Assembly: GCA_002104905.1 (NCBI GenBank)
Contig: MCFE01000010.1
Location: 124,001 to 188,000 of the forward strand
DNA from: Basidiobolus meristosporus CBS 931.73
Lineage: Eukaryota; Fungi; Basidiobolomycota
DNA length: 64,000 nt
Direction: 5' to 3'
Under the pieces are notes generated by a model, which was not told the DNA's origin, did not search any database, and saw only the letters and a program-made list of their open reading frames with translations. Position numbers and translations under genes: made by a program. This document shows positions 6,183 to 35,311 of this stretch, one piece after another. Position 1 is the stretch's first letter; every line of letters begins with the position of its first letter.

Positions 6183-8644
6183 TCACTCTTGGAGTAGACC
6201 TTGGGTGTTGGTCGGCATAGTTTGACTGTGAGTGGCTGGATACTGAGCAATGGCCATCATGTCGTGGGGCACAAGGGGGTTTTTCAGGGAAGAATCTCCC
6301 GAAGAGTTCACGAATAGACTACTCATAAGCTCGTCGAAGAAGGAATCTTGGCTGAACGGCATATCGGCTAGGTCTTGGAACCCGTCGAAGAATTCGAGAT
6401 CTCCATCGCGTACGGTGGACATTTCGTGAGGCGATTGGGATTCCGAGGGGAGGTTGAATTGTTGTTCGGGTGCGGCTTCGGTAGAAGAGCAACCAAATTG
6501 ATTGAATTTCAAACCTGAGGTAGGGGGTTGAAGAGTAACAGGAAATAGTGGGTTCTGTGCTTTGCAAGTGCTGGCCGTTTTGTTAGGAACACTGATCTCT
6601 CGCTGGGTGATGACCCGGTTCCGAATTGACACCAAACCTTTCAGCAGTATTCCATATTTCCCAGCCATAGGCCATTCTCTTTGTAGCATAAGCAGTGTAT
6701 GGTAAGTACGCTCAAGCTTATTCTTGGTTTCTTCGACAGCAGTGGCCATGTGGGAATACAATGAGTGCATGAATACTGTTCCTGCGGTGAAAATACCAAA
6801 GCTGATATGTGGGTAGTTGTAACATGAAGGATAGGAGTAGAGCTCCGGTATGGCAGCAACAATCTCGTTAGCAGAGACGATACATCTTTTCCATGAGGCC
6901 TGAACTACCGACTCCGCGGTGCTCATATCAAGATTGGAGCGATGGAGCAGGATTATAATGGCATGATATAGCATATGGATACATATGATAAATGCAGCCC
7001 TAGAATACCCACTGGGGGTTGCTTCATTCACCACCTTACAAGGATACTTAAATTGTGCAGGCAGCGACTCGGACCATGCGGTGAGGCTGTTTTCCAAGAG
7101 AGTAAACCTTGCCAGCGTTTCGACGCTGGAGCGGGATTTGCGGAATTTGGGACTGTTGACAAATTGCGATACTCTCCCCAACAAGGCAACCAATTTTACC
7201 CAGTGTGCACGATACCCAATGCAGTTCTCCTTTTTGGAGGACTGGTGGGATACGGATGATGGAAGCATGGTAGAAGCGTTGTCGGAAATATCGAGCAGTA
7301 CGGTTTCCACCGGGTTTTCGTTGTTGAAATCCCTGTCATCACAAGGAAGTAAAACTCTAGTGTCCTGCTCGTCGATGGCCATAGATCTGCCGGTTCCGCT
7401 GCTGACCAAACGATCACGGATGAAGCATGACCACCAAACCCTCCTTCGAGTTTCGACTTCAACCCACTCACTCGGACACTGGTTCTCTACCGAACCTCCT
7501 TCATCGATTCTGTTGATTCCAAGCTCTTGGGCCATTCTAATGCAACCATATGTTAGTCCAAGTGAAACAGGGTTCACGTCAATCTAACTCACCGGACAGC
7601 CATCCCGAGGTACATCCAGGATCTTGATATCCGGGCGTTGGTATACTCATAATAGGAGAAAATAAGGAGCGCCTGGATGGTAGACAGACAAGGGTCATCA
7701 AGACACAATACAAGAATATCACGGAATCGGTCCGAGAAGATCTCTCCACGTCTGGTAGATTCATCCGCGACAATAGCTGGATGGTTGGATAGGCGAGATA
7801 CACACGCACATATACTCAGAATCAATATGGGCGGGATTTCTTTGTTCTTCAATTTTCTGAAGAATGTGGGTCGATGAACAAATGGCATTTGGGGATAGAT
7901 GACATCGAAATAAAGATTCGCCAAGTGCTCGGTTATTTGTGGTGGTGGGAGTGAATCGGCTCCCACTAAACAGAGCACTTCAGAATCGCCTTTAGGAGAA
8001 GGAGTCTTCTCCTTACTTCCACCAGTGCTGAGGGAGTGAAGGCCAGAGGTATTTCCCAAATAAGATTGCGACCACACCTGCTCCACCTTCTCTCTAACAG
8101 CACTTTCTTCCTCAACCACTTCCTCCTCTTCCGCATCCGCCTCTTCCTTTGGCCTTTCATTTTGATAGGGTTGGGGGCCTTCAGGTAGCGCAAGGGAGCC
8201 AATGTTCCCAAAGAAAGGCGTACCACCTGCGTCAAAAGAGGGGATTGGAATGTGAGAGAAATTACTAAAATTATTGTAGCTAGTGGATAGCACAGGGATA
8301 GAAATCATGTTGGTGGACGCCTCGACAGGCAAACTAGAAGAACGAACAGAAACGTCTCGCCGTTCAATATTTATGGGCTGAATGGTGCTTGGAGCAGACA
8401 GGCGGCGGAAGAACTCGATGCTGCCGCCGGCAAACTCCTCTTCCATGGCCGGAGGCCCTTGTCGTGGGCCTCTTTTTTTGAAACTTGGTAAATAAGTGCA
8501 GGTCGCGTTTAAACGAATGCAGTTTGAACAACTTGGACGGTTTCCGTCACACTTGACTTTCTTTTTTCGACATACATCACACGCCTGCGTGAGGCGTCTT
8601 CTCTTGATTGGTTTTGAAGAATCCAAGGCTTCTTGAGAGTCCAT
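6183..8644 (-). CDS. Zn(II)2Cys6 transcription factor with fungal-specific TF domain, 2 exons (intron 7537-7592)
   Basis: ACDVCRKKKVKCDGNRPSCSNC zinc cluster; YLGMAVR|MAQELG joined across a GTGAGT...CTAAC...TAG intron; RRRVWWSCFIRD middle homology region. Confidence 0.93.
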
Positions 8645-9856
8645 ATCAAATATACTCAAAGACCAAGAAGAAGGTTGGGCAGTGTTGGGGATAGGATTTT
8701 CGCAGAGGTCAAGAAAAACTGATATCAGGGAAATAACTTAGGTGTAGGGCACTAAAGCACTTCGACTAGGGTTGATTGCGGAAACTAGAAATTAATGAGA
8801 GCAACTATCATATGTCCAAGCAGAGTAAGTGTGAACATGAGAAGGTATATATAGCAAACGTTGGCGGAATCCAGTTGATCCAAGAGTTTCAGTGAAATGG
8901 CAGATATAGAATCAACGCACGCTTTTGTGGGTATTGAAAATGAATACGCTTAGTAAAACATTTTGGCTATATCTTGCTTTCCACCTCTCATTGGCGTTCA
9001 TATGGATCCATTGGCCCAAAAAGCAAATAATTAGATGTCTACAGGAATCTCAAACCTGATGAATGCCATTTTGAACTGTAACATGCAATCTTGATTGAGT
9101 TAGTCTCACTTCAGGAATACCTAATAATCGTACAAACTCCATATCACTGGTCAGATGGAAGTACGACCAGTGATTGTTTTGTGCACATCTAAACTCTTAA
9201 TTCCACTTGCACTGCTGGTGGCTCCTGGCTCCCTAGAGAATGTGCTGCACCTATTACTGCTTGAGTACCGGTAGGCCATCATTCAAGAATTGGCTCAAAT
9301 CCTTGATATCCAGTGCTTGTTTGTTTACTAAAATGGTGCATAACGTGACCCACTGGAGTGAGCATGACTTGGATATTACTAGATTAGGAAGGGGCTATGT
9401 GCAATTATAGTAATACAAATCCTAAATGGAAGCGGGGACAGGGTTAGGTTTGGTTGTGTTGGAAAGCGTGCAATTGCCTTCGGGTGACTCAAATAAATCG
9501 CCTTCCACCAATACCACCACTCGCAGCACCCAAGCCCGATATGCCACGTATACCAGCTTGAATCAAACGAGTAAAATTGGGCACCTGTACTTGCGAACAG
9601 ATTCGCTTCAGTGGGCACATTGTTTCCTCTGAATGACTAAGCTTTAGTCAGGAAACGCTAATCCCTGCACCAAATGGCTGATTGGTGAAAGCGCTACTCC
9701 CACCGAATCGAAGCTTATTACAACGTTCTTTATTACCCATCAACATATTTAGAAGATTCGCACTTTGTATGCCAACTGGATGGTCCAGTGACATGCTGGT
9801 TGATGAAGGCCCAAGCTACCTATACACTCTACTATAATTCAAACAAGCTCATCCAT

Positions 9857-10922: not shown

Positions 10923-11305
10923 TTGTAACGCTGGACTGTGAAAATAAGTTGAAATACAGGAACTAAGAGTCGTTAGAAAAAAAGATATAGGTGTCTAGAA
11001 AAAATGATTTACTATTGACTTGGATGGACCATATCAAAGCAGCTGATCTAGGAATTACTTGATGATCATTTGCATGGATCTCATGTCGAGTGCAAAGTAA
11101 ATCGATATAATTATATGCATTGTACACTAGTTGAGGCCTAGATTATCATGATTAATAGATGTGTGAAAATTGCATATATGCGCTGGTGAATGTGCTAATA
11201 GGTTGAAAAAAAATGACCAACCTCACTCGCTTGCAGTGCTTACTAAGGAAGTATACACTCCACAATAAAGTACCATACCAAGTTCATAGAAATTTGGCGT
11301 ATAGA

Positions 11306-12411
<1,106 letters not shown>

Positions 12412-13331
12412 GTGTAGTACAGTAGCTTGGATGAATCTGGCGCAACAGATAATAAATTTTTCATACGATATTTGAGTCTCGTACAATATCCACTTCCATC
12501 AAGGCAGACTTGGCGTATAGACCAATGACAGATCTTATTCAGAACATCATTGATGCTCATCTGTATCGGATCACGTATGAATCTTGACGGAGTCGACATA
12601 TTATGTGACTGTTTAATGTGGAAACTAATACCAGTTCTTCGTAAAACAAACTCTGAATATTGCCTTTTATCATCGTCCTTTCTGGGAAGGCCCCTGGAAG
12701 GCGTAGCAACAAGCCGATTTTCTCCGACTGCTTCCGCCAGAGAGGTAATCAAGCTAACTGGTTTTGGGACAACTACAGATCAGGAACCATACGTACACTT
12801 GATGGTCTCTCCATGCTGCGAAAGTGGGCTAACTCATCGGAATTGGTAACACATTACATTCGGGGGAGAGGTACAACGGTTTATTGGGTACCTGATGCCT
12901 GATTACTCTCAATGCACCAATTGGCCAGGTAGCCTATCCAGCAGACCTAATTGTTGTTTTCAGCAATTTCGTACGTAAAACAAGAATGAGGCTAACATTA
13001 TCTGATGGCTGTTGAGATCACAGTAACTCAATAACGCCAATTAGCTTCGTGTGTAACTAATATCCCTCGCCTTGCGTCATTGTGAACTCAGGCAATTGAG
13101 ATATCACGCTTTAGCATAATCCACATTGGCGCTGTTTGCCAAATAGTGGAGATTCACTTTACTTGTCAATATGGTAGTACGGTGATCGTGGGCATGTGTG
13201 GGCCTTCTTGTCCAAGTATACTAGTAATTATGGGAAAATATTGAAGATACATGTACATTTCAGATGTTTCCATAAGTTTCTGAGAGGGTAAATGGTGGGG
13301 ATAGATGAATTCTGGAGTGCGTGGCATGAAC

Positions 13332-14750
13332 CTACGGTATTTTACCAGAGTCTACCACAATGTGCTCCACCTCGATAATCTCCAACTCATCTGCAAAGTA
13401 GGCGTCGTTATTTCCTTCGACGATTCTCCCTATGATAAAGGCTGGCCAACCCTCAGCTTCTTTAATGTCATGGATATACTGTTCGGCCTTGTATTCAGGA
13501 ATCATGATCATCCAGCCTCCTAGTCATGGAGATGCATTTCAGCGCACCTGCAGCCTCATCAAATGAACATTATCCACATACCTGATGCTTCTCCCAAGTA
13601 CCCACTGAAAAGACCAAGGTTCAACATCTTTTCAATGGCATAAACACCTTTGAACATTGGAAGTGTGTGGAATTCAGCTGACACTCTCGCATCAAGCGAG
13701 GTCAGCATTTGCTTGGCCTGACCAAGAATTCCCAACTGGGATACTTTGACCACGCCGTGGGTTCCATGCTTATGTAGGAGCTCTGAAGCAACATGATCAG
13801 TGCGAACCATCGATAGGGTGACAGTACTAACGAGTTGGACCACTAAAGTAGCATGGATTCGATTTTAATCAGGCTACCAAGCTCTAGAGTATGACCAGAT
13901 GTTACCTTCTTCTTGTCCAAGGTTTATGCCGAGTTTTTCCCGGTGTGATTGATTGAACAGATACTCGCGAGCCATCATTACCACCTGGGTGCCCAAGGGC
14001 TTGGTAAGCACTATTACATCGCCAGCTATGGGTTTGATAGGCTTGACGTCTGATTTTTGAGGACATATCTTTCGTGCCTCCGAAAGGAACTGCTGGGGAT
14101 CGATTTTGTTACACTTGACGCAGGTCATAAGGTTAGTGCCCTATGCATTCTTTTATAAGGCGCTATGGAATCACCTTAAACAGAGTGTATAGCTCAATCA
14201 AATTGTCTTGCTTCTCTTCGGGTAGATGCTCAAGAAGCGTGTCCAGCAGAGCATCACCGCTGCCTAAAGCGAGATTAATTGAGTTTTAGTTAATGGACAG
14301 GGATGCTTCTGATCCAGCAGAACTTACACCTTCTGAAGGGAGTCGGAGATTCGGAAGCAGGCCCCCCATTGATGTTTGAATACGAAGATTTGCTCAGGCC
14401 TGCGTTGTGGGTCTGGGCTTCTAAATCTGATGTATCACTTTTGCCCGCAACACCATCCATGTTAATGAAACAATGGCTTTGTTACCAGAACACAAGACCT
14501 GACTCTTGTTTTTTGAACGAATCGGTAAGTATGTTGAGAGGCCACTCACTTCTTATATTTCAATCCGAGGCGAAGGTGGGCTAAGGGGATTGACGTGGCT
14601 TGGTGAGATCCGTTTTTCTTCAGAGCTCCAAGTTGCCGCTAAAGTGAGTTTAACATGCTTACCTTTGTTTACATCTAGGTCAATACCTCGACCAATGCGC
14701 GCTACTTGCGAATCATGCGGTTGGTGCAAACAAATAGCAAACTGAGACAT
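13332..14750 (-). CDS. Truncated selenophosphate-synthetase (SelD/SPS) C-terminal-domain protein with an N-terminal RST-like helical domain; 5' end uncertain (ATG 14460 or further upstream)
   Basis: Introns 14264-14327, 14114-14174, 13843-13905 and 13520-13581 splice in frame. GDVIVLTKPLGTQV, HKHGTHG...LGILGQA, FHTLP, GEASGGWMI and GWPAFIIGRIVEG...IIEV match the SPS AIRS_C domain. Confidence 0.75.
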
Positions 14751-15256
14751 TCGTCACCACCTAGGTCCACACTGTGCCTAACCGATTGGGCTCCCATCGG
14801 GTGACCCTCTCAGTTACAAATTTCACTGAACTCACTATGTCTGGCCATCAGTAGAAATCGATATGAATATGTGGCCTAGGTTTAGCCGGACTTCCTGCAC
14901 AGATCAGCCCTCGTTGGGTGTAACTATTTTGATCCAAACCGGTTTCCATATTCGAAAGCACGATACTTGGTTTGTCATGTGAAATGACCAGTGGCTCAGC
15001 TGTCATGTGTAGGAACGATCATGCAAAAACGATCAACCGCTTGTCGAGCTCTACTTGAATTGGCTTGAAGTGCTGACTCACAATGGTCAGGATTTATTTA
15101 TATGGGCTAGATTATGAATTCACCTTTGATAAATACAATAACTTAAGAATTCCTATCATCGGGCAACTTGCGATAGTTAATATTTTGGACAAACGAACTC
15201 TCAGCCACCTCAAGGCAGTTGGCAGCAGTCTTTGGCGGATGTCAAGCTAACCTGCA

Positions 15257-16451
15257 TTATGTCCAAATTCCAATGATCGACATGCTGATCGCACCCGCGT
15301 ACATGGCAATAAAGTAGATGATCTTGCGCAGCTTTCTCTCGGCCTTGAATTGTGGGCTGAACATGAAGTCCATGGTAATCAGATTGACCAATGCCATGTA
15401 GATAAGAATGCCGCCGGATATCGCATCGAAAACTCCCTCAATCACCAGGGTATTTGGGTCGTTGGCCTTGTAAGAGTTTCTTATCAGTATTCCGATAAAT
15501 GCCCCGAATGGTGCCATGAATGCATAGGCGAGGCCGTTTAGGAGAGGTACCATAATCTTGTGGGGGTCCAGCTCACAGATACGTGCACCCAGGCCAATTC
15601 CTTCGAACATTTGATGAAATATTAAGGCTGCGAGCAAGGTCTTAAACTGGTCACCAGTGGTTACTCCAAGAGTGATGCCAACTGGAACGGAATGTAGCCA
15701 GATCCCAAACTCAAGCATGTAGGTAGATAGCTTCCTGCGCTTGAAATTCACACTGTCCATGACCGCGGACATATCGCCATGAGAGTGGGCACAGCTGTGT
15801 GCTTGGGCTTGTGGGTTGGGGTGGTGACTGGCATGCCTGTATTCAACATCTTTTTCTTCGTTGGTGATGGATGAATCTTCGGTCATCCCGCTAGCCAAAT
15901 ATTCAAGTAGCTGGTTCATCAAGGCCGCAGCCATGGCAATTGCCCCTGCCAATGGTGGATACTGGTGGAAAAAGTCGGATTGGCACACGTGAGTCAGACT
16001 TGCAATGGCTTCTGGCATCATGTGTACAAAGCTAAGGATCAAATATTAATTCGGGGGTTGGGGCAGCATACGTCACAACGAATTACCCTGTGGAGATTAC
16101 CACTCCAGTACCAAAATGCCTTCCAAGGTTTACTGGAAAGGAGTCAACACCGATTTTGAAGACCTTGATAAGAAACATCGGGAGGAATACACCGACAATG
16201 CTTGTGACCAAAACAACTACGGCTCCGATGATATGCTGATTTAGGTCGTATTCCCCCATGTCGGTGTGAGCGCAGTAGTATTCTTTGGTCTGGCCATTGT
16301 AGATAAAGCTGCCATCTGCAAAGGGTCATTTAATATACGAACAAGAGCTATCAAAAACCTAAACCAGCCAGTTACCCTCTGCTGAGCCTTGGGCTAGAGT
16401 GAAAGGTGTCCACAGCGTGAGAGAAGTCAGTAGTATAGAGTAGATCAACAT
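15257..16451 (-). CDS. ZIP-family zinc/iron transporter (Zrt1-like) with signal peptide, 3 exons
   Basis: Hydrophobic leader MLIYSILLTSLTLW, GRHFGTGVVISTG|FVHM, His-rich loop, LEFGIWLHSVPVG, FHQMFEGIGLG, DAISGGILIYMAL. Confidence 0.92.
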
Positions 16452-29706: not shown

Positions 29707-30416
29707 AGTCGCTCAAATCATCGGCGAGCATATATTCCTATATGTATGACCTGTAACCATGCATTTCCCTATTTCTTAGTATGTGCAGTAGGATTGCGAA
29801 TAAACTTGCACGAATGAAATGGGCAACCGTAACAACTCGGATGGTATGCTAGCTAAGAGCATGCTACAGACCCTGGAGTCAAAAACCCTTCTGGTATACC
29901 ATTCGCTTTTGCTTAGAGGATTGGTCAAAGTGGGTGTATGAGATTTGGTGCCATTTATATCGCCTTGAATATTACTCGGGCATTTCATTCATTCTGTACT
30001 TCCATAGGATAGGTAAAATGTTAGAAAACTAATTCATGTTCAGAAAAATCACCTAGAAAATTAAAAATGGCGGCACCAAACCATGTAACCAATTATGCAA
30101 TAGGATATTTGGCTTAAGTTATGTAATCTGAAATTCAATTCATGTTGAATGTATTTAGTCCAAGCTATCACTCTCTGGAGTATTTACTACTGTCAATACT
30201 TTTGAAAGATTTACAGTTACATCTAAATACTCCATTAACTTAGTTACATGGATCTTAGTATACGTATCTTTGATTATTTTGCTCAAATTCATTATTGGGA
30301 TTTGTAATTATTTACCAAGATCTAAAGCATTCAGTGAATCATCAAGTGAGAACCACATAATCTACTTGCTCCCCCAGTTGCTAAATATGACCAGCATTCT
30401 GTCCTGACCAAATTTC

Positions 30417-30692
30417 TAGTTGGGACTTACTTAGAATACTGTCACTAACTTATCAGGTATCCAGAACATGAAAATTCTCAACGTAAATTATGACTTTTCT
30501 CAAAGTTGTCCAAAAAACCCCAAACTTTGCGCACATATTCTTGGGACCTTCCTTAACAAACTCTACACGTTTTTTTGCTCTTCTTTATCACAAGTATAAA
30601 TACCATACTTTTGATCAATAAATCAAAAAGTGAATAACACGTAAATCCTCAAGTTCTCCATATCACTTCCAATACTCCTCAGGATGTTGCAA
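30417..30692 (+). repeat. Degenerate LTR-like repeat copy
   Basis: Aligns by eye to 31892-32130 (ttagaata...cagaacatgaaaatt...gttgtccaaa...ccaaactttgc...agtataaatac...caataaatc...tcacttccaata). Confidence 0.7.
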
Positions 30693-31622
30693 CTAGAAGT
30701 AACTATGGGCCTTTAACTCCATCTGCCTAAATGACAAAGCCAACATGCCAATTAAGTGCACAAGTGTCAAATCAGTAAGGTATGCTTGAAAGGCACTGAA
30801 AGATATCTATCAGTCATGTTCAGCTGCCAAGATAATGCACCTAGAGCACAAACACCTTACTGTCAGCATTTTATTAGGGGAAACATGTGATACTTAATTA
30901 GCAAGATTGCCTTGTTAGTTAATTACATGCAATCAGCTGGCATACAAGCCACTAATAAATGCTATAGCCATTGTAAATTTTGTAATACACCAGAATATGC
31001 ACTTATCTTAGTCACTCAATTCATGGTATAATGATCTTATAGTATTTTGCCCAAATTCCTTGTTGGGATTTATCTGGAATTTTTCACCAAACCATCAGTT
31101 GCCCCCCATATAAGAATTCTCAAGATTGTACAAAGAGCCTCAGATATTTCACACTTGCTCTTGTGACCTTCTCAAACAGATCACATATGCTTATCTGGTC
31201 AATATAGTATGACAATATAGATACTACATTTATGCTTAATAAATTAATTATGCAACAATCATAAATACCTGATTAGTGAGCTTCTCTAAATATTAGAAGT
31301 GATCAGGAGAATAAGAATTGCACTGTAATTTCAAACTCTTGATTTCTGTTTGTTGCCATATGGAGTCCTGGAGTCACCAAAGAGGTACTACATCTACAGT
31401 ATCAATGATAGGTCAGATAGACCAAGTCCAGATCTATTGGCTGCTTAATTAGAAACTGAAGCATGGCATGATATATAGAATACACTGTGGTTGGTTAGGG
31501 ACACAATTCAGCAGACAGATGACTCACTATAGGTACTTACCACCAGTTACTAAAGTAGTAATCTTATGGAGCTCAAGAAAGTAACCTACTGTAGCTCTTT
31601 TTGTTGTAACAAATTTGGAATT

Positions 31623-32876
31623 TTAGCACACTTGGCCAATATGCTACAATTGATCTAGATGGTTCTATTGCTGTACTTGTTATATATAACAACACTCCTA
31701 CTCAACTGATATTCATAGCAACTAAGCCTAATTGGAATACAAGATATTCGAATTTGTCTCTAGCTAATGATATTGTGAATATATATTCAATCATTTTTGT
31801 TGTAAAAATTTGGAATTCCACCTAAATATTTACTTAACTTAGTCACTTAGATCATTACCTTCAGATCCTAGAGAATACTGACCAAATTCCTTGTTGGGAT
31901 ATACTTAGAATATTTACCCAGAACATGAAAATTAGATAAGTTGTCCAAACAGCCCCAAACTTTGCACACATGTTCTTGGAACCTTCCTTAGCCTATTCTA
32001 CGTGTTTGTTATGCCAAGACCATGTAAAAGTATAAATACTACTTTTACACTCAATAAATCATTAAGTGAAAACCATATAATCTACTTGTCCTCCCAAATC
32101 ACTTCCAATATCTCCAAGACTCTTACAACACTTTTCACTACTAAAGCAGAGTAAATGTCAGTCTGTGAGACTACAAAGGAAGTATTATGGCTACAAAAGC
32201 TTCTTTAAAACTTGGGCCTATATTGAAGCTCCCCTACCTGAGCATATCATAAAGCTCAGGATATATTCAATTAGGTACAAATCAGATATTTCATACCTGA
32301 GCAAAGCATAAAGATATTGGATGCTGTTTCATTTAGGAAGTGATTGAGGATAATGTAGTTAACTTAGCTTACTGCCCTACTGATAAGATTGTTGAATAAG
32401 TTTTGGAGATATTGAAAGTGATTAGAAGAACAGGTAGATTATGTGGCTTTCACTTAATGATTTATTGAATATAAAAGGAGTATTTATACTTGTACATGGT
32501 CTTGGCATAATAAGCACATATAATATGTCTATGAAGGTCCCAAGAACATGCATGCAAGGTTTGAGGCTGTTTGGACAGCTTATCAAAATTCCATGTTTTG
32601 GGTACCTGATGTTTTAGTAAAAATATTCTAAGATTTGTAAGTAATGATCTAAGTGACTAAATTAGGTGAATATTTAGGTGCAATTATGAATTTCTACAAC
32701 AAAAATGATTGGACATATATTCACAATACCATTAGCTAGAGACAAATTTGAATATCTTGTATTACAATTAGGCCTAGTTGCTATAAATATCAGTTGAGTA
32801 GGAGTGTTGTTATATATAACAAGTACAGCAATAGCACCATCTAGATCAATTGTAACATATTGGCCAAGTGTGCTAA
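31623..32876. repeat. Long imperfect inverted repeat, arms about 31623-32130 and 32390-32876, spacer about 260 bp
   Basis: The reverse complement of 32390-32876 matches 31623-32130 along its length (e.g. ttagcacacttggccaatatg, gctgtacttgttatatataacaacactcctactcaactgatat, gtcacttagatcattac). Confidence 0.9.
31892..32130 (+). mobile_element. Solo LTR-like element (about 240 bp)
   Basis: Starts TGTTG and ends CAACA; TATA box (tataaata 32031) followed by AATAAA (32053); related copies at 30417 and 32390. Confidence 0.65.
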
Positions 32877-33378
32877 CATGATATATGAATGTTGAGGGGA
32901 AATAAAAACCATTTATATCGCAGTAGTAGCTGTGGTAAGGCCATAGTTTATTTCACATGCTTGGTAGAAACAGAGCACGATAGTCACCATTGAATACTTG
33001 AAAGGAGCTCTTGATTACTAGTTAAATCCTGCAAGTAGTATTGTATACCATATTCCAGCATACTAGTTCTCATCCAGCTGGGTGGCAAAATCATGGCTAT
33101 GATATGTTAGCTTAGCATCGAATCACGAGCATTATAATTGTCCAAAAAATTCAAATGTTCGAACTTGTGCTGGAATTTGGACCTATTTAGCAATATTGAT
33201 GTGGGGTTTTCATTCACATCAAGGTGTAAACGTCGGTTGATTCGTGCAAGGCTAAATCCCTTTTGAAGTGTAAAGATCGGCTGACAGCATCCTTTAGAAA
33301 ATATACTTTATTTTGGTGTCCAACTATTATTAATCGTACATCTGCTGTTAGTTTTCTCACCGTATGATCACATTGTTG

Positions 33379-35311
33379 CTAATCTTTCTTTGAATCCGCC
33401 AAAACGCCGATAATACTTTCAGGAGAGTACTTCTCTACAACATCAGGTTTGTGCAACATGTTGAACTCCTCGGATGCATCTCTGCCAGCAAACAGAAGAA
33501 TAGCTTTAGCGCCACCAGGGTGATCAGGCAGAAACTTGGTGACATCGAGCACCTGTCCATTTACAATCACCCAACAATCCTCCTTGGTGTTATGTTTGGC
33601 CACCTCCTCCAATTTATAGATTTTTTCCTTAGCCTCTGGCTGCTTACTGGCCGGAGTGGAAGGAGCTTGACTTGAGGACTGTTGGTTAGTGGGGAACTGG
33701 AAAGATCCGCCACCGTTGGATGAACTCTGTCCTTGACCATTCCACATAATGTCGAGCTGCAAGCGATTCTGTTCCGGGACGAGATTGATGGCTATCTGAG
33801 TTCCCAGATGGCCAGCAATATTGACCAAACGTCTGTTTGCAAGCTCACTGTTATTTCCTTGCTGTGGGTTTTGGCTTAGATATTTGGCAGCGCTGTTTCC
33901 AGCAACCCGTCCAAATACCACACAACCCAGAAGTGAACTGCCACCAAGTCGGTTGGCGCCATGTACACCGCCTGCTAGTTCACCGCAAGCAAACAGGCCC
34001 GGGATCTTGCCTTGGGGTCCTTTGATGCACGACTCTGGGTCAATTTCAACTCCACCCATGGTGTAGTGAAGCACGGGAGTCATCAATGCAACATGGAACT
34101 CCTCATTCATGTTGATGGGTACGTTATGGAAAAACTTCTTACCCCAGGGGTCATTCTTGTTTTTCGCGAAGCCATTATAATCGCTCAAGGTTTTGGCAAG
34201 AGTGTCGGGGGAGCAACCAATCTCCTTAGCCAACTCCTGGCCATTCTTGAATTTTTTCATCAGACCACGACCAACGTAATGCTTGCAGTGCCACTCGATT
34301 TCCTTCGAAGCCGCTTCGTTGAGCACCAGTCGAATGGGGAACTTAGATTTCCACATCTCACCAGTGACATAATCGCGGTGCCCTAGCTCGTCGCAGAAAC
34401 GCTTGCCTTCTGCGTTGATCAGAATCCCACCAACGCCGCGAAGGGCCTCAGCGGCTAAGAACTTCACCTTGGCGTCGGGTTCCTTAGGGTCAACCAGTCC
34501 GGTAGGATGTACTTGGATCTTCTCCAGATCGACCGTATTGCCACCGATAGCCATCACCATTTTGTGGCCATCACCGGTGGAGTACTCCCCATTGGTGGTT
34601 GGGAGGTCAATGAATTCTGGGCGATACTTCTTGATCAAGGAGTTCTGAGTGAAGTCGGCGGCATAACCACCAGTGGCGAGCACCACTGGTCCATATTCTG
34701 TTTGCTTCTCCCCAGCCCTGTTTTGATACTCCACTCCGATCACGGCACCCTTATCATCTTTGAGGAGGCCAGTAACCTGTGCCTTGGTGATGCACTGAAC
34801 ACGATGTGGTTCTACGCGTGAGAGCTCTTCAAGCTTTTCCATCAATGCGTAAGTGATGGTCATTCCTGGGAAACGCTCCTTACCACGATGTGTGCGTGGG
34901 AATGAGTGCCCACCAAGCCGAGCAACCAAGGAGAGGTCGAGGTCAAATCGAGTTTGTAGCCATTCAACAGCAGATGCGCTGTTTCCAGTTAGAACTTTGA
35001 CAAGCTCTGGACGGATCAAGTCCCTGGCTGACTTGGCGGTATCGTCGTAGAACGCTTGTACACTGTCCTGTAATTTCAAGGGGTTCAGTTGAGAATCGCC
35101 TAAGTGGCATGTTCAACGTGCTTACCTTGATTCCTAGTTCTTTCTGTGTCTTCGTAAGTGCACCATTGATACCAGAGGTGGCTTTGGTAGAGTTTCCACC
35201 GAAAAACGAACTCTTATCGATAACTAATACGTTGCCTCCGGCTTCGTAGACGGTGTGTGCAGCAGAGAGACCTGATAGACCTCCTCCGACGACAATGACT
35301 TTGTTTTGCAT
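33379..35311 (-). CDS. OSM1: FAD-dependent fumarate reductase (Osm1/flavocytochrome c type) with C-terminal cytochrome b5 domain, 2 exons (intron 35068-35125)
   Basis: VIVVGGGLSGL FAD motif, GGNSTKATSGIN, LGGHS, QVHPTG, HYTMGG, HGANRLGGSSL; cytochrome b5 motifs HNTKEDCW and HPGG. Confidence 0.93.

Follow-up and report, generated by a model that had tools for sequence, protein, structure and literature searches.

What does a fungus keep half of a selenium enzyme for? A gene of Basidiobolus meristosporus CBS 931.73 encodes three RST-like helices followed by the C-terminal half of a selenophosphate synthetase (SPS), and it comes from a kingdom in which selenium machinery was long thought to be absent altogether (bioRxiv 10.1101/314781). 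The gene lies on the minus strand of a 64,000-nucleotide stretch of contig MCFE01000010.1 (here the window, to whose first letter all coordinates refer unless the B. ranarum locus is named). It raises three questions: whether it is a real gene, whether its product could still be an enzyme, and what the product does if it is not. The reading that we hold to be most likely, with moderate confidence, is that the gene joins an RST-like hub to a dead SPS half, is under purifying selection, and encodes a non-enzymatic adaptor.

Three-frame translation and splice-site mapping place the gene on the minus strand at 13332–14460, stop included, as five exons encoding a 292-aa product. The original prediction of four canonical, in-frame introns is correct: the introns (64, 61, 63, and 62 nt) are all GT-AG, and the spliced product is identical, letter for letter, to the annotated hypothetical protein K493DRAFT_310297 (P0001), which came up when exon 4 was searched exhaustively with HMMER. 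The product carries the helical segment SGDALLDTLLEHLPEEKQDNLIELYTLFK / CNKIDPQQFLSEARKIC, plus GDVIVLTKPLGTQV. The 5′ limit had been placed too far upstream, at 14750, where an ATG opens a separate ORF of 65 codons (14750–14553); the CDS starts at 14460. Apart from this limit, the features described in the original prediction stand. The features of the locus are as follows.

13332–14460, minus strand: whole CDS (splice model, identical to K493DRAFT_310297 / P0001).
14328–14460, minus strand: exon 1, with the start codon and a disordered, poorly conserved N-terminus (residues 1–44 and the first base of codon 45; from pLDDT and comparison with B. ranarum).
14175–14263, minus strand: exon 2, RST-like helices 1 and 2 (residues 45–74; Pfam RST 49–90, helices at 47–56 and 60–74).
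13906–14113, minus strand: whole exon 3 (splice model).
14066–14113, minus strand: first 16 codons of exon 3, the Ile78 loop and RST-like helix 3 (residues 75–90; helix at 80–90, alignment with TAF4-RST 7ac1 through KIDPQQF).
13906–14059, minus strand: remainder of exon 3, a linker and the start of the SPS C-domain, with GDVIVLTKPLGTQV (phmmer against human SEPHS1 residues 176–224, E 7.5e-5).
13582–13842, minus strand: exon 4, core of the SPS C-domain (Leishmania SPS2, 5l16, and human SEPHS1, 3fd5, E 5e-5 to 8e-4).
13730–13753, minus strand: degenerate motif VVKVSQLG, residues 174–181, with Asp replaced by Lys176 (alignments, column counts).
13332–13519, minus strand: exon 5, end of the SPS C-domain (to residue 281), a short tail, and the stop (SPS HMM 252–307, E 1e-13; AF2 strands to 281).
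14553–14750, minus strand: 65-codon ORF outside the CDS and 5′ of it (frame analysis; tblastn E 0.12).
15257–16317, minus strand: ZIP zinc-transporter gene, the upstream neighbour and a synteny marker (Pfam Zip E 1e-45; tblastx colinearity).

The AlphaFold (AF2) model of the whole protein (mean pLDDT 79.7, pTM 0.74) contains a disordered N-terminus (residues 1–44, with pLDDT below 50 for residues 1–43), three helices (residues 46–90), and a complete AIRS_C domain (residues 104–281). The RST-like and SPS-derived parts are joined inside exon 3, not at an intron, and SPS homology runs from ARKIC onward. An orthologue is present in B. ranarum (K7432_001301; P0016), with a length of 297 aa and 68% identity over 97% of the length.

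The RST domain is an alpha-alpha-hub: in plant RCD1 and TAF4 it docks short motifs of disordered transcription factors, of the (D/E)x(Y/F)x(D/E)L type, and it comprises four helices, with an H2-H3 hairpin and flanking helices. The helical segment of the Basidiobolus protein had been predicted to resemble this domain, and Pfam, a PDB sequence profile, Foldseek, and VIA-align all place RST first. In particular, Pfam RST (PF12174) matches residues 49–90 with 24.6 bits (E 2.4e-5, for segment 40–100) against a cut-off of 22.7; the full-length protein (21.1 bits) and B. ranarum (19.3 bits for the segment, and 16.1) stay below that value. A profile made from the two segments, compared with all PDB sequences, gives a single significant match, Arabidopsis TAF4-RST (7ac1, E 0.004). 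Modelled alone with AF2, the isolated segment forms three helices (pLDDT 78), for which Foldseek returns 7ac1 as the top match (prob 0.99, rmsd 0.9 Å over 42 columns, 33% identity, E 0.29), followed by RCD1-RST and then by the alpha-alpha-hub families HHD, PAH, and TAFH. VIA-align against 48,161 representative chains ranks RCD1-RST first (Z 6.5) and TAF4-RST second (Z 6.3), a Z of about 6 being ordinary for small helical domains. A word search with residues 40–100 returned the protein itself and no other family member, and ESM-Atlas, queried with the helical part by feature and by shape, gave no usable match.

The match covers positions 11–52 of the 67 positions of the RST profile, and the fourth RST helix is missing. 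In the alignment with TAF4-RST, the Ile of NEIPK is matched by Ile78, which lies in the sequence NKIDP (in B. ranarum, NQIDP); an anchoring Ile or Met in the H2-H3 loop is typical of RST (PMC7948954). Relative to the RST domains of plant TAF4 and RCD1/SRO (PF12174; 7ac1, 5oao), the segment thus shares the H1-H2-loop-H3 arrangement with its loop Ile, but differs in having no fourth helix, in its near-threshold scores, and in its fungal host; moreover, it is coupled to AIRS_C, whereas plant RST domains are coupled to PARP/WWE or to a histone fold. Because each score is modest and the fourth helix is missing, we call the segment RST-like and do not treat it as a proven member; because four methods agree, a chance match is unlikely.

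The modest scores would also suit a different account of the helices, in which they are a convergent or much-diverged cap over the face of the C-domain that was bared by loss of the N-domain, the protein being a single-module pseudoenzyme with any function in the C-domain alone. RST scores near or below threshold, the Foldseek E and VIA-align Z values given above, and the missing helix 4 are what a cap might produce; RST has been reported from streptophytes only (PMC6672047, PMC7948954), the junction with the SPS part falls within an exon and not at an exon boundary, and the pTM of the whole protein is compatible with packed domains. We nevertheless consider a cap unlikely. Four different methods independently rank RST first among families or structures, identity to TAF4-RST reaches one third of the aligned columns with the loop Ile conserved, and the isolated segment folds alone with confidence similar to that in the whole protein.

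In SelD structures the C-domain gives one of the four metal-binding aspartates, the Asp of ATDVTGFG, while the other three sit in the N-domain together with the Sec/Cys-x-x-Lys loop. Apart from the near-threshold RST match, Pfam detects AIRS_C alone (PF02769, residues 104–269, E 7e-10), and it finds no AIRS N-domain (PF00586) in either Basidiobolus protein. The SelD models of NCBIfam match over model positions 166–345 only, with 38–64 bits for B. meristosporus and 45–78 bits for B. ranarum against cut-offs of 125–299; specifically, TIGR00476 (cut-off 125) gives 38 and 45 bits and NF010705 (cut-off 291) gives 64 and 78 bits, each below the cut-off. The closest solved relatives by sequence are eukaryotic SPS, namely human SEPHS1 from residue 176 and Leishmania SPS2, and the C-domain of the AF2 model superimposes on human SEPHS1 (3fd6) with E 6e-16 and an rmsd of 1.8 Å over 188 columns (32% identity). 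Bacterial SelD is 15–19% identical, and SelD, HypE, ThiL, and PurM are much weaker fold matches (13–19% identity). We assign the half to the eukaryotic SPS type because eukaryotic SPS match it best and the bacterial SelD, HypE, ThiL, and PurM match it far more weakly.

The absence of a Cys/Sec-x-x-Lys segment and of an AIRS N-domain, claimed in the original prediction, was confirmed in the protein and in the upstream DNA: the 292-aa product has no Sec/Cys-x-x-Lys segment, and SPS profile HMMs detect none upstream. Likewise, VVKVSQLG was found at 13753–13730, as predicted, in place of ATD(V/I)TGFG; the corresponding sequence in B. ranarum is VTTVSHLG. The catalytic Asp176 is thereby replaced by Lys in B. 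meristosporus and by Thr in B. ranarum, with its invariant neighbours T178, G179, and F180 altered too. At the 62 positions where conservation among 42 SPS C-domains is 90% or more, both fungi keep the conserved residue in 34 and both have lost it in 24, and 20 of the 24 altered columns carry one and the same new residue in the two species. The core motifs TKPLGTQ, HTLP, and ETSGG are intact. Compared with eukaryotic SPS2/SEPHS2 (SelD; e.g. Leishmania 5l16), the protein has a homologous AIRS_C (32–37% identity, rmsd 1.8–2.4 Å) and the common motifs GDV-x-VLTKPLGTQV, HTLP, and ETSGG, but has no N-domain, has the ATDVTGFG Asp replaced, has the 24 near-invariant columns altered, and stands on a very long branch. 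To judge from these residues, the Basidiobolus protein is a catalytically dead SPS C-half, one that cannot make selenophosphate because the N-domain is missing whole and the sole catalytic Asp of the C-half is substituted.

Retention of more than half of the conserved columns, and of many core motifs, would be in keeping with a split enzyme, its C-half catalytic together with an SPS-type or PurM-type N-half from another locus. This we consider very unlikely, as the catalytic Asp of the C-half is replaced, and by a different residue in each species, its three invariant neighbours are changed, and tblastn detects no SPS N-domain above chance anywhere in the 64-kb window. The known distribution of the selenocysteine (Sec) pathway also speaks against a split enzyme: as far as the available text of the surveys goes, nine species of fungi have been found to carry Sec machinery, Harpellales accounting for seven, and Basidiobolus does not appear among the Sec users (bioRxiv 10.1101/314781, PMC10386755). 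The same text describes the Sec-using fungi as a few early-diverging species, with "no traces" in other members of their phyla (bioRxiv 10.1101/314781, PMC10386755). In the DNA at hand, no tRNA was detected in the 64-kb window, and no Rfam or SECIS match was detected at 12300–15300.

The loss of catalysis has not been followed by decay of the gene. The B. ranarum gene has four introns, which match those of B. meristosporus in codon and phase, and the same ZIP neighbour. The fusion, whose conservation in relatives had been proposed as a check, is retained in this second species. Selection was estimated (Nei-Gojobori) from one pairwise comparison, B. meristosporus with B. ranarum, as the gene is found in two species only; dS is saturated, and because pS is saturated (0.76 overall) we give no number for dN/dS. 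The RST-like part (residues 45–92) has pS 0.64, pN 0.146, and 75% protein identity, and AIRS_C (residues 104–275) has pS 0.76, pN 0.137, and 76% protein identity, such that pN is about one fifth of pS in both folded domains; the N-terminus (residues 1–44), with pS 0.89, pN 0.61, and 26% identity, is unconstrained. In a maximum-likelihood tree built without named fungal SPS sequences, the Basidiobolus pair branches off on a stem of about 2.4 changes per site, and the two species are separated by 0.3. The pattern is not one of decay: a burst of change came first, and constraint then returned. Saturation of pS contradicts a recent transfer between the two Basidiobolus species.

Neutral evolution, which had been named among the outcomes that would refute the original prediction, is incompatible with pN of 0.14 against saturated pS in the folded domains, and the gene is a real protein-coding gene under purifying selection. 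A decaying pseudogene or annotation artefact, that is, a functionless leftover of a truncated SPS, might be suspected from the truncation of the enzyme, the dead motif, and the annotation of the protein only as hypothetical; it is extremely unlikely in view of the intact ORFs and identical intron positions in two species with saturated synonymous sites, the low pN in both domains, and the 20 derived residues that are common to both species and were then kept.

The start codon and the stop of the ZIP gene at 15257 are about 800 nt apart; in the B. ranarum locus (L001) the gap is about 500 nt. An upstream exon supplying the AIRS N-domain, likewise named as a refuting outcome, was found in neither species: two profile HMMs of SPS (from 108 and 20 full-length sequences), applied with filters off (--max) to all frames from the ZIP gene to the CDS, match from the C-half onward only. 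The ORF at 14553–14750 contains ARIGRGIDLDVNKGKHVKLTLAAT, which resembles a strand of arthropod SPS N-domains (15/35 identities; tblastn 14631–14723, E 0.12). As a candidate relic of the N-domain, the stretch at 14631–14723 (ARIGRGIDLDV...) was rejected; neither SPS HMM sees it, and it has no B. ranarum counterpart. The upstream regions of the two loci have no conserved block in common, the whole ORF has no counterpart in B. ranarum, and splicing cannot join the 65 codons in frame to the CDS. The likeness of this ORF to an SPS strand is probably due to chance, and the ORF could be a uORF. A mis-modelled full-length SPS with missed N-terminal exons, for which that weak match, upstream and on the same strand, is the one positive sign, has next to no probability given that unfiltered HMMs find nothing N-terminal between the ZIP stop and the start codon, that the match lies in an ORF that is neither spliceable in frame nor present in B. 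ranarum, and that in both species the interval ends at the ZIP gene. The pseudogene and the mis-modelled gene are largely excluded by these data.

Single-sequence and profile searches of a collection of 5.8 billion proteins yielded about 3,400 scored homologues, among which only the two Basidiobolus proteins align beyond the C-half, over nearly the whole query. The other matches listed align with the C-half alone, covering 61–68% of the query; among the matches listed, nearly all carry both PF00586 and PF02769, and the few with AIRS_C only are shorter fragments. The exhaustive HMMER search with exon 4 returned, besides the protein itself, SPS fragments and no further family member, and two metagenome scans found no family member. 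The combination of an RST-like segment with an SPS half therefore looks new, as the original prediction had suggested, and has been seen so far in Basidiobolus only.

The SPS fusions in the literature are of another kind. All published cases are full-length enzymes with N-terminal extensions; they come from bacteria and protists, non-protist eukaryotes having yielded none (PMC4561486). Specifically, the fusions with an NADH-dehydrogenase-like protein, with NifS, or with a methyltransferase, and the Plasmodium extension, are like the Basidiobolus protein in having extra sequence N-terminal of SPS, but they are complete, presumably active, and found in Sec-using bacteria and protists, whereas the Basidiobolus extension replaces the N-domain of a dead enzyme (PMC4561486). 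Another parallel is with animal SPS1/SEPHS1 and the paralogues annotated as "inactive selenide, water dikinase-like", which are likewise derived from SPS and retained for a function other than selenophosphate synthesis. Non-catalytic paralogues of the SPS1/SEPHS1 type, however, are full-length, two-domain SPS with a residue other than Sec or Cys at the catalytic position, and SEPHS1 keeps ATDITGFG, whereas the Basidiobolus protein consists of a C-half, with no second SPS domain, and a foreign N-terminal hub. The Basidiobolus protein arose independently of SEPHS1.

The non-enzymatic adaptor that we favour would work through two surfaces, one on the RST-like hub, where a linear motif of a partner would be docked, and a second, conserved one on the re-purposed SPS half. 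We infer the adaptor or scaffold function, the nature of the partners, and the origin from a fungal Sec pathway. What seems to have been re-used is a remnant of the lost selenocysteine pathway, since the dead half and the hub are both kept under purifying selection. From the analogy of RST proteins and of human SEPHS1 in Zincore, one may reasonably guess that the protein acts in transcriptional regulation; the SEPHS1:QRICH1 "Zincore" is described as a transcription-factor coregulator that controls gene expression (title of PDB 9hjt; PMC13134290, PMC13538652). A bolder proposal, which we consider doubtful and decidedly unlikely, is that SPS-derived scaffolds have been recruited to transcription more than once, with the Basidiobolus protein as the fungal counterpart of Zincore SEPHS1 and its RST-type hub docking a factor in cis. 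If this were true, RST would be older, or more widely spread, than the accepted origin in streptophytes allows.

On the adaptor reading, the gene is a trace of selenium machinery in a lineage outside the known Sec users, kept and reshaped, not lost. It would join animal SEPHS1 as an independent example of an SPS turned non-enzymatic, and it is the first case found in which the C-terminal half of SPS is the sole survivor. It would also place in a fungus an RST-like alpha-alpha-hub, a fold regarded as a land-plant invention. Being a small protein of two modules, it is suited to testing what an isolated AIRS_C binds.

In both species the ZIP zinc-transporter gene lies directly upstream and is co-oriented with the SPS-half gene (window 15257–16317; L001 4296–5495), and the two ZIP genes are 88% identical in their C-terminal part. 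Besides this pair, the only gene common to both loci is a transcription-factor gene of the Zn-cluster / Fungal_trans type (window 6750–8650; L001 10344–12612), with 37–51% translated identity, whose distance and order relative to the SPS-half gene differ between the two species. On the 3′ side, an intron-containing gene on the plus strand (window 11207–12408) converges on the SPS-half gene; it matches Ala_racemase_N weakly (E 5e-4) and shows motifs characteristic of the YggS/PROSC pyridoxal-phosphate homeostasis family. In B. ranarum, a COX6B gene stands where this Ala_racemase_N-like gene would be. Farther along the window, at 30000–34000, the G+C content is 0.34–0.39, compared with about 0.44 elsewhere in the window.
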